A stretch of 63,107 bases of DNA, filler included, from Salisapilia sapeloensis CBS 127946 (Eukaryota; Protista; Oomycota), in the NCBI GenBank assembly GCA_023334545.1. It is 12 parts of 12 records of this genome, joined end to end, with 100 filler letters (N's around TTAATTAATTAA, not from the genome) between each part and the next. Parts side by side here need not be neighbours in the genome. Positions count along the whole stretch, not along the records: positions 1 to 7,582 come from JAADVB010000514.1; 11 more parts are not named here. One strand, written 5' to 3'. This document shows, one piece after another, positions 1 through 7,950 of the stretch. The position numbers and the translations under genes are program-made. The stretch's first letter is position 1; each line of letters starts with the position of its first letter. Below the pieces are notes generated by a model. It made no database searches and was not told the DNA's origin. It was given only the letters and a program-made list of their open reading frames with translations.

Positions 1-1
1 C

Positions 2-1360
2 ATGGACTTTGGTGACGAGACGCTCCATACAGCCTTTACTTCCTCTTCCTTGGCGTGCACAGAGCCGCCGCTCAGCGCTGATACGCCAGCCACCCAGACA
101 AGCGTCGAGACTCACCTGCCTATAACTGGAGGTGTTGGCACACGCGTCTGCTCAGTTGATTCTAAGATAACGAAGCCGAAGTCTCGATCTCGACGGTACC
201 GGAAACGTCCGAAACAGGAGATCGAACAGCTTAAGGCCCAAGTGGCGGTATTAGAGGCGAAACTGAAGAAACTAGAGAAAGAGGGAGAAAGCAGTCGCGA
301 TGAGGCCGTTCGTATTGCTACTACGTACAGTCTTCCACCCTTCAACCTCATGGAGGCAAAGTTGAAAGATGGCACGATGCCAGAAGTACCGACCACTAGC
401 AAATTGTGGGAACGCATCGCATTGTACGAAAAAAAACGTGAGCGTGCGGCGAAAGACGAAAATGCCTTCCTGAGGTCCCGAACGGAAGAGCAGAAGAAGG
501 TTTTGGTTCACCTTCAGGACAGTATGCACGAAGCTTCGCGAGTCGAACGCCAGAGCGAATCTACTTGCGCGCAAGAAGCCTCAAGTGCGGCGACGGTCGA
601 GATGTTGGAAGCTTCCGACGGATTTGAGAGTAGTTCCTCCAGTAGCGACTCGTCCACTCGTGTTCCTTCCAAGAGTCTAATCCGTACATTGGACCAGCTC
701 CACGACCAAGTAGATGACGTTTTGAGCTCTTGTGGCATTCTCCATCAAGATGTAGAAATGCATCGAGGCCCTCTGTGGGGAGACTCGTTACCTCTACTTG
801 TCTCCTCTGACTATCTTGAGCAGATCGAATGCCGTGTATTTCCCTTCCACTTTAATGTTGTCGATCAAATCGCCTGGAAGTGTCTCGGCAGCGCCCCCAT
901 GTATCATCCAAATGGCGTGTATGAGCCTCAGGAGTACACTCCAGAGTACATCCGAGCGACTTTTACAGATCACCTAAGTCTATCTCGCGCAAAAGCCTCG
1001 GGTACGACGACCATGAAGCGTTTTATTGAAGCTGATCGAGTGGTAATCGTTTCTTCCGTTTTCTGTGAGGTGCAAGGCACATATTCAGCTTGTTTCAGTG
1101 GAGACAGTATGATGGTCGTGCGTCCACCTATCGACCCATCTGCATTGCCCACAAGCTCTGTCGATGAAAAGGTCAGTGTACTCCAGTCGTATATGACGCT
1201 CAAGCCAAGCACAGACTTTAGTAACCAGTCAGGCGATATCCCACAGCACTGCTTTCCATTTCTGAAAAAAGCGATGAAAGATATTATGCAGAACATGCTG
1301 GCGTGCATGCAGCTCATAGAAAACTCACTTCTGCGAGACGCCCATCTTTTATCGACATAG
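2..1360 (+). CDS. M96-like oomycete protein, copy A (basic/leucine-zipper-like coil plus START-like C-terminal domain)
   Basis: Uninterrupted 452-aa ORF. Basic-heptad segment RSRRYRKRPKQEIEQLKAQVAVLEAKLKKL, LWERIA motif, and C-terminal PFHFNVVDQIAW...RFIEADRVVIV pattern typical of this oomycete family. Family assigned by recognition. Confidence 0.75.
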   Translation: MDFGDETLHTAFTSSSLACTEPPLSADTPATQTSVETHLPITGGVGTRVCSVDSKITKPKSRSRRYRKRPKQEIEQLKAQVAVLEAKLKKLEKEGESSRDEAVRIATTYSLPPFNLMEAKLKDGTMPEVPTTSKLWERIALYEKKRERAAKDENAFLRSRTEEQKKVLVHLQDSMHEASRVERQSESTCAQEASSAATVEMLEASDGFESSSSSSDSSTRVPSKSLIRTLDQLHDQVDDVLSSCGILHQDVEMHRGPLWGDSLPLLVSSDYLEQIECRVFPFHFNVVDQIAWKCLGSAPMYHPNGVYEPQEYTPEYIRATFTDHLSLSRAKASGTTTMKRFIEADRVVIVSSVFCEVQGTYSACFSGDSMMVVRPPIDPSALPTSSVDEKVSVLQSYMTLKPSTDFSNQSGDIPQHCFPFLKKAMKDIMQNMLACMQLIENSLLRDAHLLST

Positions 1361-1790
1361 TCTATATTTTTGATCATTTCTTAGTTTCAAGTAAGACGTA
1401 ACGCAAGATCCCGCAAACTTTTTCTTTTAGTCTTCAGGTCCATCTATAATTCTTTTTTTGCTTTCTTTTCTTACTTCCGCTCAGATCTGGTTCATTTCAA
1501 TCGACAAGAGTTGCATAGATACTTTTAAATACATGAAATACTTTATTTTAGGACGTATAATCGGTCGTAGGTACATGCTACCGATTGCAGATACGTTTAT
1601 GGAGAGCTCTTGTCATGCTATTGGAATGAGTATGTCATCATGCTCCTTTAAGCTTTATTCTAATGTAGCTATAGGATTATGTCGACCAAGCTGTTGCCTA
1701 GGAAGTATACACTTGAGCATAAAAAGTAGATGTAAGAAGTATAAATGTATCGTGTATTGCGGTACGACTGCAACGCCGGCCAAGTGGGCA

Positions 1791-3310
1791 CTAGACGACG
1801 GTACCAGTTTCGAATTTGACCGCATTTGGCCACGCGTCTACAGTTTCTTCCTTTATCAATCTTTCCAAATGTTCTTCAAAATGACCGATGCGGTTCTTGT
1901 GAGCCGCCAGTACAAAGTCTGTTAATTCGCCGATCCGAAGCTCACTATTTGTTCTCGTCTGATCGTACACTTGCGGCCGCATCGTTGCAAAGAACGATAG
2001 TCGCGTCTTACCAGACGCTGGTCCTTGATCCTTCGAGAAGATTGCCCATCCGACATCCTGCACGTACAATCCAGTCATGGGCGCATCGGAGATTTCTAAC
2101 GGTCGAGTTTCTGCTCTCCAGATGAAAACAACTCGATCAGACTCAATGAATCGCCGAACCGTCCGCTTTCCGACCGAGTGTGCACTTAGTCCAGTTTCAT
2201 CCACTCGAAGACCAAACTTTCGACAATCGATATGCTGATCACGACGATAGATTTGCTGGTAGTAGCAGTCATCTAGGAATCCTTCACGACTTAATACGCG
2301 CCACATGGCACCTGCCGCTTGCTCCCAGTCGAAGGAAATGAGTCGAGAGGCTGTGATTTCAACATGCACGCGACTGACTGGATCGTTCTTTACTTGCATA
2401 TCATAGTACGGTTCTTCATTCGTTAGAGATCCGATACCAGTGGACATCAATCTGCTCTGGAGGTTCCCATAGACTTGACCGATCGTTATCAGTTGATCCT
2501 GGAAGAGAGTGGCATCATCCTCGAGGTACATGTCAGGTAGATTATTAGGTAAAGAGTCATCCGATCGATGTCGTTTGCTTGCGGAAGGGACGTGGAAGAG
2601 CTAATGTACACGTAGAGTTAGTACTTCTATAGGAAAAATAGACAAGTTATTGTACATACATTCTCTTCATCTCGACTAGGTCGCTTTCGAAGGATTTGGG
2701 CGAGACTAGTGGCTAATTTAACCTGGTCATGCAGCATAGATCGCAGTCTCACGTTCTCTTCCTCCGATTTGGTACGTTCTGAATGTTGTCGAATGGCTAA
2801 ATTGCCCCATACTGTGTTTTCCATGGGTTTACGTGGGAGTTCCTGTCCAGAAGTCGTTCCCTCTTTTAACCCTTTCAAGTTCGATTCCAGCTCTTTGACT
2901 TTCTCTCGAAGGTATAGGAGTTCCTGTCGTTGTCGACGTACTCTCTTCTTCTTCGGTGGTGGTTGCTCTTTCGACGGCAATGTCGTTGCATTCGTCTGGA
3001 CAGATGGAGTCACATTGAACGGTGCTAAAGGTGCTGATGGAGCGATTGGGCTGGTAGTCGATGGCGCGATCGAAGGTTTTGTCGAGGACGATGTTTCCAT
3101 GGTTTCCTCTGGCATTTTTCCTAACGGCAACGGTAAAGCTGAAGTGGCTGATACGGATGCTGACGAGAAGGCGTCGGCAATATCTACTGTCGGGTCTGGC
3201 ATCATGGACAGCAGCGAGCTGTCTTCGGAAGCGATAGAGTTCACTTCATCTGAGTCGCACTCGTCGATGAACGAGAGGAGAGCCTCGAGCTGAACGGAAC
3301 TGTCCTCCAT
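1791..3310 (-). CDS. M96-like bZIP-coil/START-like protein, 2 exons: 3310..2660, 2600..1791
   Basis: The 59-nt intron 2659..2601 (GTATGT...TACTAAC...TTAG) joins the two listed ORFs in frame (EEN|LFHVPS). Motifs RVRRQRQELLYLREKVKELE, VWGNLAIRQ and RRFIESDRVVFIW. Confidence 0.8.
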
Positions 3311-5376
3311 TGCCTTCAGAGCACAATCGATTGTGTCTTAAATCGATGGTTTTGGAGGTCGACGCGCATACTCAACGCAAGTCAAAGACACAACCCGTCT
3401 GAACGTAGGCTGGGCGATATAGACTGGGCAGTTCGAATTTGATGAGCTACTTTCTTTGCATTCTTCACCCCTTCCATCCATAAAGTAGGTTCAGAGGTTG
3501 TTCGTGAGCTAGGGGCTTGTTTTGTGAAGTAAGGAGCGTGGTGGTGGTGGTGTATTTTTATATCTGCCATAGAGGAGTTTTGTTAGCAAAGACTCTTCAA
3601 TCCTTTGCGCTTGTTCTTTGCACTTGTTCTTCCAGAGGATGGTAGATTGTTGTCATGTAGATACGCACTCAAGTTTCCGTCGTGCAAATAGATACTACTG
3701 ATCTTTGCTCAAGAGTTGTATTCGATAAAGTAGTAGACAGAAAGATAGTAAGAATGCTACTCTACGGATAGCACAATATCATAGAGACTTTTGCTAGATA
3801 TACTCCGAGTAGACCCTTCATTCATGTCATCACGAGTCTCCTGACGGACTCGCTTGTATTGATTTTTTCTCATGAAAGTTGGTATGATTGTTTTGGTCGA
3901 CTACTTTTACATTGTAATTTGTGATAGCTTTAAAGAGGTTAAATGCAACGGAGTAAAACTCGAACGCAAGTTGGCGATAGGACATGGGTATGTTTGGGCT
4001 CAACTGTTCAAACTCCATGAAGAAATCGAATCGGTTTATCTTTTAGTATTCGAACGAATCGTGTAAACAATTGCGCTAATCGAGAATCAAATCCCAGTGC
4101 GTAAAAGTTTGTTCTAGCTTTTAGCGACATAATCGATGTAGGTTTTAAGATCTTAACTATTTTTTATGTTGCACTGAGACTTTTCAAAGGTACATATAAG
4201 TACATGTTTTTGTTTCTCTGCGTGCGAGATTCGAGTTCACTTTTCTTCTTATCGACAATGCTTTATACATCCAATGTCCTATCCTTTTCTTGGGTGAGCC
4301 AAACGAGCGTCGATATGTGATGTGGTAATGCTCTGCATCCATACCGTAACGTCGCGAATTGAACACATAGGTTTATCAACTCCGTGAAATGCCATTCACG
4401 GCTCCAATATCTACTTGGTTTGGCTCCTTTGATTATTCATGTTCGTTTAGAGAACTGTTGGTGGACTTGAATAAGATGAACAAGTCGAGGCTAATTCTGT
4501 TCTGTGCCTGATGAAAGTCTTGACAACTACAATACACTTAAAAGCATAGGGCGCAAGGTTTGAATCCAAAACTGACCTCATTATTCAACAGCCGCAACAT
4601 TCCCACGCACATTGGCACTTTTCCATTAGATCCGGAAATAATTAAGCTTCATCCAATTACAAGATTGAACGCAAAAAGCTTTAAAATTTTCTAATGTTTA
4701 CATTGGTAATCACGTGTGGTATGCGCTTACGTTTTGATCGTCATCAGACTACGTGTCAAGTGCATTTCATAATGAAAACAAATATGCGCTTCCTCTACAT
4801 GAGACACAAGAGGCAGCGCCAATCTGCTGATTGCATGAACACTATTTATTGATAGAAACCCGAATGGGACTGAGATATCATATGACATCTACAAGGTTTT
4901 TGAGATGATATTGATTGAAACCCCGTGCTCGAAAGCATGAAATACCTCTATGTATAATGTACAAATGGATCGAGCCCTCTGGCATACTTGGATTGCCCCG
5001 TTTGACCGGAACTAGTATTGCTCTACTCTAGGTTTCCATAATCAACTCTACGTTGCGAAGTTCATCACTATAAAACTGAAACCGTGTCTACCTCCGCACA
5101 GACCACGATGCTGTCTCTTGCATACAACTTAATGCAGAAGACGATATAACACGTGATTTATTGCTTCGACTTACCATGAATCTCCTGTACCCATACATTA
5201 ATCCACGGGCTTATCGTAGATTACCAATCTAACGCTTTTAAAAAGATCCAATTTATTTATAAGCAATGAAACCACTACTCTCTTCTTGTCCGTATGATTA
5301 CTTCTTTCCTACACACTTCTACTCAGTCTAGATCGGTAGCGGAAGTACACAAGTTACATTCGATAACTATTCGACA

Positions 5377-6036
5377 ATGACCCTTTCCTTCGTGGATGCC
5401 AGTTCCCTCCCAATGACACCAACTTTGGATCAAGCCATAACGAATTTGGACACGCCAACACAATCTGCAGACGTCCAAGTTCAAGTACAAAAGAATGCAA
5501 CGACGGTCGACAGCGGTGTTGATCATAACGGCATCCCTGTAGGTCACTGGAAAATAGGTATTTACGAGTGCATGCACAACGGCCTTCGTGACGGTAATCC
5601 TAGCACTTATTTAATACTTTGCAAGAGATCTAATTCCTTTTAATCGTTTGTTAAAGTGTTGATGGCATCATGCTGCAGTGGACTGGTCATCGCTCTCATT
5701 GCAGCTCGTGTCGGCCTGATGAACTTTTATGTTGTATTAGCTCTCTTCAGCATTCCATTCAGCCTCTTCATTGCTACCATTGCAACGCAAAACATCGTTT
5801 TCCTGGAAGTTTCGCTTGTTGTAGGCATCATTGTCCTCTTCTCCTGCGTACGTCTCCGCTGGCGAATCCGTCAACTCTTCTCTATACCAGAGTCTCCCTT
5901 CCAGGACTTGTTCTACACTACTTGCTGCGGTTGCTGCTCCATTGCTCAAATGGCGTATCATGTTGATGCATACGAGCCAGGCACATTTGCATACTCACCG
6001 AAGGACACGTTACCAGGATACGAAGTGGAAGTATAA
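5377..6036 (+). CDS. PLAC8-family cysteine-rich membrane protein, 2 exons: 5377..5593, 5657..6036
   Basis: The 63-nt intron 5594..5656 (GTAATC...TTAAAG) restores frame. Motifs GHWKIGIYEC, SCCSGLVIALIAARVG and LRWRIRQLFSIP...CCGCCSIAQMAYHV. Confidence 0.85.
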
Positions 6037-6225
6037 ACGAAAAGTCTATAAGAGGTCATGCTCTATACCATGAGCAACGTAGCAAGGATGATAAGCAGTA
6101 AAGCAAGATTAATACAACGTACATGTATTGAACACATATAAACAGATCAACTCCATAAACGCACGTAGCTGGAGTTAGAGCTCTCAATCGGAGTGACTCG
6201 ACTGTAGTAGCAGCAGAAGAGGGTT

Positions 6226-7581
6226 CTAGTATCCTGTCGAGTGTATAACTCCAAGCATTGTGCTATCAATATAGAGCATGAGATCCTGCAAGGTATACAG
6301 TGATTCACATAGTATATCGCGCATAGGTGGTAAGTTGCTTCGTGTCGTTGAGGATGTGCCTTTCACTCCTTCTACATAAGGTCTCGCTGTTGCTCTGCTT
6401 AGAACAACGGACCTATTACCGCTTGCACCCGACATGCGATCAGCTATGGATGAGTTATCGACTTGCGGACGCACGACTACCCAGGTTTCACCACTGATAC
6501 GCAACGAAGTAGCTCCTTTGATCTCTATCATCGCCCAGGAGACAATGACCGTCCGTGACTTTTCTTGATAGCGCCTGATGTTCACGTGACCACTAACTGG
6601 CACATGATGTGAACGGAGCTTATCTGTAAAAGTTGCATAGATGCATTGGTCATCCCATGTTTGTGGCTGGAAAGTGCCATTGGGATGATGCAGAGGAGCA
6701 CTGCCGAGACACTTCCAGGCGATTTGCTCTGAGATGTTATAATGGAGTGGGAATACTCGACACTCGATCTGCTCAACATAGTCAGAGGATGCGATCAACG
6801 GGAGGGAACCTTTGCACACAGGACCACAATGCATATCCAAATTCTGCTGGAGAATGCCACAAGAACTGAAGACATCGTCCACTTGGTTGTGGAGCTGGTC
6901 CAACATATTGGTGAGACTCTTGGAAGGAACACGAGTGGACGAGTCGCTACTGGAGGAACTACTCTCAAATCCGTCGGAAGTCTCCAGCGTCTCGATCGTC
7001 GTCACACTTGAGGCTTCTTGCGCGCAAGTAGATTCGCTCTGGCGTTCGACTCGCGAAGCTTCGTGCATACTGTCCTGAAGGTGAACCAAAACCTTCTTCT
7101 GCTCTTCCGTACGGGACCTCAGGAAGGCATTTTCGTCTTTCGCCGCACGCTCACGTTTTTTTTCGTACAATGCGATGCGTTCCCACAATTTGCTAGTGGT
7201 CGGTACTTCTGGCATCGTGCCATCTTTCAATTTTGCCTCCATGAGGTTGAAGGGTGGAAGACGGTATTTTGTTGCCATGCGAATAGCTTCGCCTCGATTG
7301 CCATCTCCCTCCTTCAGTTTCTTCAGTTCGTGCTGAAGTGTCGCCACTTGGGTTCTCAGTTCCTCGATCATATGCTTCGGTCGTTTCCGGTTCTTTCGAC
7401 AGCGAGGTTTGTATTGTCTCGGCTTAGGCTTGACTATGCCGGTGCCAACACCTCCAGTTATAGGCAGGTGAGTCTCGACGCTTGTCTGGGTGGCTGGCGT
7501 ATCAGCGCTGAGCGGCGGCTCTGTGCACGCCAAGGAAGAGGAAGTAAAGGCTGTATGGAGCGTCTCGTCACCAAAGTCCAT
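6226..7581 (-). CDS. M96-like oomycete protein, copy B (inverted paralogue of 2..1360)
   Basis: 451-aa ORF. First 47 aa and a central block of about 85 aa are identical to copy A; the C-terminal half is diverged. Confidence 0.75.
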   Translation of the reverse strand: MDFGDETLHTAFTSSSLACTEPPLSADTPATQTSVETHLPITGGVGTGIVKPKPRQYKPRCRKNRKRPKHMIEELRTQVATLQHELKKLKEGDGNRGEAIRMATKYRLPPFNLMEAKLKDGTMPEVPTTSKLWERIALYEKKRERAAKDENAFLRSRTEEQKKVLVHLQDSMHEASRVERQSESTCAQEASSVTTIETLETSDGFESSSSSSDSSTRVPSKSLTNMLDQLHNQVDDVFSSCGILQQNLDMHCGPVCKGSLPLIASSDYVEQIECRVFPLHYNISEQIAWKCLGSAPLHHPNGTFQPQTWDDQCIYATFTDKLRSHHVPVSGHVNIRRYQEKSRTVIVSWAMIEIKGATSLRISGETWVVVRPQVDNSSIADRMSGASGNRSVVLSRATARPYVEGVKGTSSTTRSNLPPMRDILCESLYTLQDLMLYIDSTMLGVIHSTGY

Positions 7582-7582
7582 G

Positions 7583-7682
7583 NNNNNNNNNNNNNNNNNN
7601 NNNNNNNNNNNNNNNNNNNNNNNNNNTTAATTAATTAANNNNNNNNNNNNNNNNNNNNNNNNNNNNNNNNNNNNNNNNNNNN
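7583..7682. other. Assembly spacer (N-run + TTAATTAATTAA + N-run)
   Basis: 100-bp artificial linker with stops in all six frames. Confidence 0.98.
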
Positions 7683-7744
7683 ATAGACTAAGAATATAAA
7701 GCGGTATTTACATCGGCACCACCGACCACTTGCTTTTGCACTCC

Positions 7745-7950
7745 CAGTTTGACAGGAAAGTTATATTAAAGTGTTACGTTAGGTTTCCAATGGTAAGTGG
7801 CAAAACAAAATCGGCTATTCTCACCGAACGCGGAAATTCTCGGTTCGATTTTCATCGACAGGACTACAAAATGCGAATTCCCAGTGTTGCCGAATCAATA
7901 ATCAGCGCAAAAGCGGCCTTAGTATTGTTTGGAAATTGTAAGCTAGCATG
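7745..7950 (-). repeat. Copy of a dispersed decayed element (homologous to 34102..34320)
   Basis: agtttgacaggaaagttatatt(a/g)aagtgttac...atcggctattc...tgccgaatc...cggcct is shared with the 34.1-34.3 kb copy. Minus-strand remnant HWKPNVTL*YNFPVKLG vs HWKPKVTLQYNFPVKLG. Confidence 0.75.

Follow-up and report, generated by a model that had tools for sequence, protein, structure and literature searches.

Why should a single contig begin and end with the same bases, read on opposite strands, when the two genes that carry these bases are otherwise strongly diverged? The question is raised by contig C828 of the oomycete Salisapilia sapeloensis CBS 127946, which in its entirety forms positions 1-7582 of the window (the whole 63,107-nucleotide (nt) stretch of DNA that was analysed) and belongs to an assembly of 22.4 Mb in 1365 contigs. 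Two inward-facing paralogues, genes A and B, bound the contig (Table 1). An earlier reading, made from the sequence alone, had proposed that the A/B pair either flips the DNA lying between the two genes or undergoes gene conversion. Our analysis finds in the patchy A/B identity a strong signature of interlocus gene conversion between old inverted paralogues. We consider it highly probable that C828 combines old inward-facing paralogues and recent interlocus gene conversion with contig ends that were set by a loop in a k = 141 assembly graph.

Genes A and B share 63% amino-acid identity over their full length. In their alignment, exact runs occupy 1-141, 330-360 (31 nt), 362-480 (119 nt), 482-587 (106 nt), 612-678 (67 nt), and 866-891 (26 nt). 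Alignment confirmed the claim that bases 1-141 are the reverse complement of 7582..7442, with 100% identity between the two ends. The near-identity described for 330-587 against 7262-7005 was also found, with two mismatches (361 and 481, both synonymous) in place of the one synonymous change noticed before. The third tract, placed at about 612-678, proved exact over 67 nt against 6980-6914. Around the internal tracts, a longer and diverged arm pairs 277-916 with 6676-7315 at 87% complementarity. Between tracts 2 and 3, the differences crowd into a stretch of 24 nt (588-611). This stretch, lying between the 106- and 67-nt runs, differs mostly at non-synonymous sites and reads SAATVEMLEA in A and SVTTIETLET in B.

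Synonymous (dS) and non-synonymous (dN) divergence was estimated along the A/B codon alignment with the Nei-Gojobori method. Amino acids (aa) 1-47, 110-196, and 197-226 gave dS values of 0.03, 0.04 (0.037), and 0.15, and dN values of 0, 0.01, and 0.06, respectively. The segments aa 48-109, 227-305, and 306-452 gave dS values of 1.26, 1.23, and 1.6, dN values of 0.34, 0.17, and 0.95, and dN/dS ratios of ~0.27, 0.14, and 0.6, respectively. The last of these bears out the description of the C-termini as strongly diverged. The longest identical run and the longest window with two or fewer differences were taken as test statistics, and the differing sites were shuffled 20,000 times. None of the 20,000 shuffles matched the observed values, either for the arm (all nucleotides) or for the whole gene (third codon positions). 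When the test was limited to third positions in the initial ~303 codons of the alignment, the longest run was reached once in 20,000 shuffles. Since identical silent sites adjoin saturated silent sites, recent non-reciprocal recombination is indicated rather than constraint at the protein level. The proposal of ongoing or recent conversion between old inverted paralogues is upheld by this combination of tracts at dS ~0.03, flanks above 1.2, and shuffles reaching the observed values at most once. About 540 of the 1356 nt of coding sequence seen are homogenised, and we infer that conversion, rather than another process, made this mosaic.

A repair mechanism could account for the pattern. Double-strand-break repair with the inverted paralogue as template would copy short patches between genes A and B, in one event or several. 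The parts homogenised in this way would be the 5′ end (at least 141 nt, probably extending further upstream) and a stretch of ~350 nt that spans the central helix of the protein. The cluster of differences at 588-611, set between identical runs, suggests separate events or patchy mismatch repair. Ectopic recombination would be favoured because the A/B family is multi-copy and clustered.

The ends of the contig call for a different explanation. The terminal repeat is 141 nt long, and the default k list of the assembler MEGAHIT ends at 141 (COBRA preprint, doi 10.1101/2023.05.30.542503). De Bruijn assemblers break at branching paths and leave shared end sequences whose length is that of the largest k-mer, maxK (doi 10.1101/2023.05.30.542503). 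For comparison, 16 other whole contigs of the same assembly were sampled. Terminal inverted repeats of exactly 141 nt were found on two of them, C822 (7776 nt) and C836 (7285 nt). About 165 kilobases (kb) of sampled sequence held three repeated 141-mers, namely the terminal pairs of C828, C822, and C836, and no repeated 142-mer. The longest internal exact run in C828 is 119 nt. A k = 141 graph can pass without branching only through repeats below that length, and the contig does continue unbroken through its internal tracts. The first difference between A and B lies at base 142, which puts the contig edge exactly 141 bases further out. Because the repeat length equals k, recurs elsewhere in the assembly, and comes with no repeated 142-mer, C828 is best explained as a de Bruijn graph loop between two copies of a shared node. 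The assembler would have merged the identical 5′ ends of A and B into one 141-mer node, and a path leaving one side of that node and returning to the same side would be emitted as a loop contig.

This explanation removes the biological meaning that had been given to the contig breaking at the same base on both sides, since 141 is a k-mer length and recurs on the unrelated contigs C822 and C836. The match does start at the c before the ATG at both ends, as reported. Its position says nothing about the start codon, the cut being placed by k = 141 outside the base-142 difference, and its landing one base before the ATG is a coincidence. In general, a terminal inverted repeat as long as the assembler k is a graph artefact, not a biological break point or evidence for identical promoters. 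A cheap screen for such an artefact is to ask whether the same exact repeat length recurs at other contig ends. The C828 ends resemble the maxK overlaps of MEGAHIT and metaSPAdes described for COBRA (doi 10.1101/2023.05.30.542503) in having a shared end of 141 that recurs in the same assembly. They differ from the usual case, a direct overlap between neighbours or a circular genome, in that the ends of one contig are mutually reverse-complementary, that is, they enclose a spacer between inverted repeats.

The two other loop contigs are not alike in content (Table 1). The DUF2817 pair on C836 has 52% amino-acid identity and only ~50% nucleotide identity after base 169. Its Pfam match starts at profile position 92, which places the 5′ thirds of these paralogues off the contig, in the collapsed part. 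A further observation on contig ends concerns C820, where positions 1-320 hold a dispersed repeat of ~320 nt with more than 30 copies at 89-95% identity across the assembly, many of them at contig ends. This repeat is probably a short mobile element (a short interspersed nuclear element, a miniature inverted-repeat transposable element, or one resembling a long terminal repeat) that fragments the assembly.

What lies outside the arms was approached through the end words. The terminal 141-mer of C828 has no copy in the other contigs of the whole assembly, and likewise no other contig holds the end words of C822 and C836. No neighbouring contig with the same end word was therefore found in the assembly, and a metagenome scan with a 30-nt word from the contig end gave 0 matches. 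Two unique flanks would normally be contigs carrying that word, so the missing neighbour fits a short or double-coverage shared contig that was filtered out. The neighbouring contig was probably short or collapsed and lost in this way, and the identity between A and B likely runs further upstream. The sequence-only reading had also expected upstream identity, arguing from the break at the same base. That argument falls, as a shared node ends a contig regardless and the break is uninformative; the expectation itself fits the lack of any other contig with the 141-mer.

Several points weigh against conversion combined with a graph loop. There are just two close copies, and gene C, at ~23% identity, is too distant to serve as the outgroup that would tell donor from recipient. 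The case is built on assembled sequence. The assembler itself is deduced from the repeat length of 141 and its return on other contigs rather than from metadata. Finally, the tails of C825 and C832 overlap in reverse complement by 121 nt, not 141. The loop leaves this overlap unexplained; it may stem from an earlier k step or from post-processing.

Two alternatives deny that A and B have exchanged sequence. The identical tracts could be an assembly artefact in which near-identical paralogous reads were collapsed or cross-assigned and the contig understates the true difference between the copies; we regard this as quite improbable. Multi-k assemblers do pop bubbles and prune low-depth variants, and the terminal 141-mer is a collapsed node by construction; yet such a shared node needs the exact word to be present in both copies, and the diverged flanks are two real loci on one continuous path. 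The internal tracts, moreover, do not reach the length of k and have copy-specific bases on either side. Each 141-mer in them is therefore specific to one copy, and the copies were resolved separately, including at 361 and 481. Selection acting on the nucleotide sequence itself, through an embedded RNA element or an overlapping gene, is the least credible of the readings considered. The ~90 synonymous sites fully conserved beside saturated flanks (dS >1.2) are not expected from constraint, and C836 repeats the pattern with genes that are unrelated to A and B. In its favour, the tracts coincide with the disordered N-terminus and the central helix, and antisense open reading frames (ORFs) of ~100 aa overlap 112-574; these ORFs have no support, however, and no Rfam match was found. 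A transposon with long terminal inverted repeats was rejected, since the arms consist of gene bodies that have diverged and belong to a cellular family, and since the interior is single-copy. A fold-back or amplification chimera was rejected as well: the arms differ by at least 13%, hence they are two loci.

Recombinational flip-flop accepts exchange between A and B and goes further. Crossing-over between the inverted tracts would invert the 7.3-kb interior, and both orientations would coexist, either as a passive polymorphism, as in plastid inverted repeats, or as a regulated switch, as at the mating-type loci of Ogataea and Komagataella. We hold this to be unlikely. The geometry had been described correctly, as crossing-over within a tract would turn the interior around and exchange the 3′ halves of the two genes, giving A5′/B3′ and B5′/A3′ genes. 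The segment is indeed flanked by inverted repeats, 7.3 kb apart, that match perfectly over at least 141 nt, and the conversion tracts show that the A and B copies recombine. Because of the symmetry of the graph loop, inversion through the terminal repeat or one further upstream would leave a short-read assembly looking alike in either orientation. Nevertheless, the Pfam and ORF survey of the contig revealed neither a gene for a recombinase, a homeodomain protein, or mating type nor any hint of silencing at the locus, and efficient crossover would call for longer identity than the tracts seen here offer. The contig is unbroken at the 119- and 106-nt tracts, where abundant A5′/B3′ chimeras would branch the 141-mers, which argues weakly against frequent crossovers in these tracts. 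A like terminal structure on unrelated contigs is evidence that it is not special to the A/B locus. The likening of this locus to the flip/flop of methylotrophic yeasts or to a shufflon is not supported, apart from the general resemblance that in both systems inverted repeats flank a segment whose inversion exchanges adjoining gene parts. Unlike them, C828 lacks MAT genes, a site-specific recombinase, and a centromeric or telomeric setting, and gives no evidence of two orientations. Pfam detected no mating-type regulators with centromere or telomere silencing within the contig, whose flanks lie off it. As to a shufflon, neither ORFs nor domains in the 7.6 kb point to a recombinase, and the repeats are gene bodies rather than short crossover sites. 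A programmed flip-flop switch is very improbable.

Three of 17 sampled contigs (~7.5 kb) are loops between perfect inverted repeats, and in two of them the arms take in the 5′ ends of paralogous genes; this frequency comes from a small sample in which all but two contigs (~1.9 kb) are sized 7.3-7.8 kb. A bolder reading, in which the perfect repeat reaches well upstream over both promoters, the 7.3-kb segment flips through it by homologous recombination, both orientations and occasional A/B chimeras coexist, and the genome may be unusually rich in palindromes, is unlikely as a whole. If this were true, palindrome-like loci would be a genome-wide mechanism that co-regulates and reshuffles young gene pairs.

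Gene conversion between A and B, by comparison, has well-described counterparts. In Caenorhabditis, convergent and divergent gene pairs that form long near-perfect inverted repeats show interlocus conversion (PMC1803023; PMC3966223). Interlocus conversion of inverted gene pairs of this type is the closest match to the A/B locus. In both, homologous genes stand in inverted orientation at a distance of a few kb, the tracts are mosaic, and the identity within a genome is far too high for so old a duplication. They differ in that A and B are only partly homogenised and their flanks are saturated at synonymous sites. The human Y palindromes P1-P8 show gene conversion between their arms (PMC8600007). 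There too, inverted arms enclose a unique spacer and conversion keeps the arms identical, and the perfect part of A/B runs outward off the contig, so that the true A/B arm may be longer than the contig shows. Unlike the Y palindromes, the A/B locus is on a scale of kb, not hundreds of kb, and its inner arms are old and diverged. The A/B mosaic is real but ordinary biology, a further case of a known phenomenon. It amounts to mosaic conversion of two inverted paralogues from an oomycete family that evolves fast and lies in clusters.

The proteins of this family were characterised through sequence searches and a structure model. Pfam assigned no family above threshold, START models included, to A, B, or 40 aligned relatives. 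A word-indexed protein search with gene A gave no match, and the family profile as query gave 2 proteins. The full HMMER search returned 68 distant relatives, the best at 26-31% identity and none closer than 31%, with named members from Lagenidium, Globisporangium, Nothophytophthora, and Pythium oligandrum. A language-model search placed protein A among clusters that are 100% Oomycota. On these sequence matches, the A/B family appears to be confined to oomycetes. An AlphaFold2 model of A, built from a 42-sequence alignment (A, B, and the 40 relatives), reached a mean predicted local distance difference test score (pLDDT) of 74. In the model, a disordered N-terminus (aa 1-66) precedes a helix at aa 69-108 that bears the basic patch and leucines in heptad spacing. 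A long helix follows at aa 132-192, and a disordered Ser-rich linker then leads to a well-predicted alpha/beta domain at aa ~220-451 with pLDDT mostly >88. This C-terminal domain superposes on the START domains of CERT, STARD3/4, and StAR with a Foldseek probability of 1.0. VIA-align of the domain to the START structures of CERT, STARD4, and STARD3 gave Z scores of 12-13 with ~190 residues aligned. The C-terminal domain of A and B is accordingly modelled as a START fold (Bet v 1-like, helix-grip), an assignment at the level of fold that sequence-family membership does not accompany.

The helical part is less distinctive. Pfam did not place A among the bZIP transcription factors, its score being 19.6 bits against a gathering cutoff of 27.6. 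Among the 42 members, bZIP_1 and bZIP_2 drew weak Pfam matches in one each, and we call the segment zipper-like only. Sub-threshold Pfam matches to GrpE and bZIP were treated as coiled-coil noise, and a profile search of PDB sequences returned coiled-coil noise only. Plant homeodomain-leucine zipper (HD-ZIP) III/IV proteins combine a homeodomain, a leucine zipper, and a START domain. A and B compare with them in having a zipper-type dimerisation helix followed by a lipid- or ligand-binding START fold. Unlike HD-ZIP III/IV proteins, they lack a homeodomain, and neither the START nor the bZIP models of Pfam score above threshold in them; the likeness is architectural only.

Placed on this model, the homogenised parts of the genes (1-141 and 329-679) encode the disordered N-terminus and the central helix, and the diverged parts (143-328 and 680-1357) encode the basic zipper-like helix and the START domain. 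The zipper and START segments remain diverged under purifying selection. This would fit selection for distinct partner or ligand specificities, with the specificity-determining parts perhaps preserved, and could also be due to chance.

The A/B family is multi-copy and clustered in this genome. The coiled-coil/START profile matched 32 times; we take these matches to represent at least 20 loci, many of them in clusters. Four family loci stand in tandem on the minus strand at C458:26779-37116, and others are located on C1000, C347, C804, C783, and C527. Some family matches carry in-frame stops and may be pseudogenes or hold introns. In one relative, P0001 from Lagenidium giganteum (2113 aa), an entry flagged as being of low quality, the match falls into 7 stretches, as though a gene model had been fused over a tandem array.

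The sequence-only reading had further noted that the family is annotated as mating-associated M96. The label does exist, as UniRef names the relative P0038 (Pythium oligandrum) 'M96 mating-specific protein f...', and the features of true M96 are lacking in A and B. True M96 of Phytophthora infestans is a secreted wall protein with a signal peptide, ~271 aa in the mature form, an N-terminal third of ~14% His, and a remainder of ~50% Gly/Ser/Tyr (PMC5999078). A (452 aa) and B (451 aa) begin with an acidic N-terminus, MDFGDE..., and contain 1.3-2.7% His in the N-terminal third and 20-22% Gly, Ser, and Tyr beyond it, which sets them apart from M96 as described. True M96 in Phytophthora is described as a mating-induced family under concerted evolution, multi-copy, clustered, and tandem, with copies thought to be homogenised within species (PMC5999078 and its reference 22). 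The A/B family is likewise oomycete, multi-copy, and clustered, with homogenised copies. It differs in consisting of intracellular-looking coiled-coil/START proteins in inverted arrangement, true M96 being secreted and tandem. Use of the M96 label for the coiled-coil/START family looks like annotation drift. The label is a propagated UniRef name and no evidence of a mating role, and 'M96 mating-specific' should not be relied on for oomycete coiled-coil/START proteins.

Table 1. Features of contig C828 (window positions) and the 141-nt terminal repeats of two other contigs (positions along each contig)
Feature	Positions	Strand	Description
Left terminal inverted repeat	1..141	+	Exact; 1 nt upstream and codons 1-47 of gene A
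Gene A	2..1360	+	ORF, 452 aa; inward-facing with gene B
Putative conversion tract 2	330..587	+	258 nt; pairs with 7262-7005; spans the long central helix
Tract 3	612..678	+	67 nt, exact; pairs with 6980-6914
Gene C	1791..3310	-	Distant third member of the A/B family, ~23% identity to A; exons 3310-2660 and 2600-1791; intron 2659-2601, 59 nt, GT..AG
AT-rich spacer	3311..5376	.	37-40% GC, single-copy
PLAC8-family gene	5377..6036	+	Pfam PF04749; exons 5377-5593 and 5657-6036; intron 63 nt, GT..AG
Gene B	6226..7581	-	ORF, 451 aa; inverted paralogue of gene A
Right terminal inverted repeat	7442..7582	-	Exact; 5′ end of gene B
C822 terminal inverted repeat	1-141 and 7636-7776		Takes in no more than the final 23 nt of a Myb-domain gene
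C836 terminal inverted repeat	1-141 and 7145-7285		Inward-facing DUF2817 paralogues

The reading frame of gene A is still open at the contig edge, and the ATG at base 2 is a likely, unproven start. The interior was said to carry a third family member and a PLAC8 gene, and both were recovered, by hhalign and Pfam, respectively. The introns of these two genes were read by eye, and their exons were searched singly, without joining them into spliced proteins. Against the family profile, hhalign gave E = 3.8e-19 for exon 1 of gene C (the basic/coiled-coil part) and E = 1.7e-21 for exon 2 (the START part). Exon 2 of the PLAC8 gene belongs to PF04749 with E = 1e-10 and 42.8 bits, above the cutoff of 34.4. 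Rfam and tRNA scans of the contig returned no family and no tRNA, respectively, and a tandem-repeat scan found a single trivial repeat. The spacer between gene C and the PLAC8 gene lacks any ORF longer than 64 aa. At 2 kb, it is long for an intergenic stretch, given that the rest of the contig is gene-dense.

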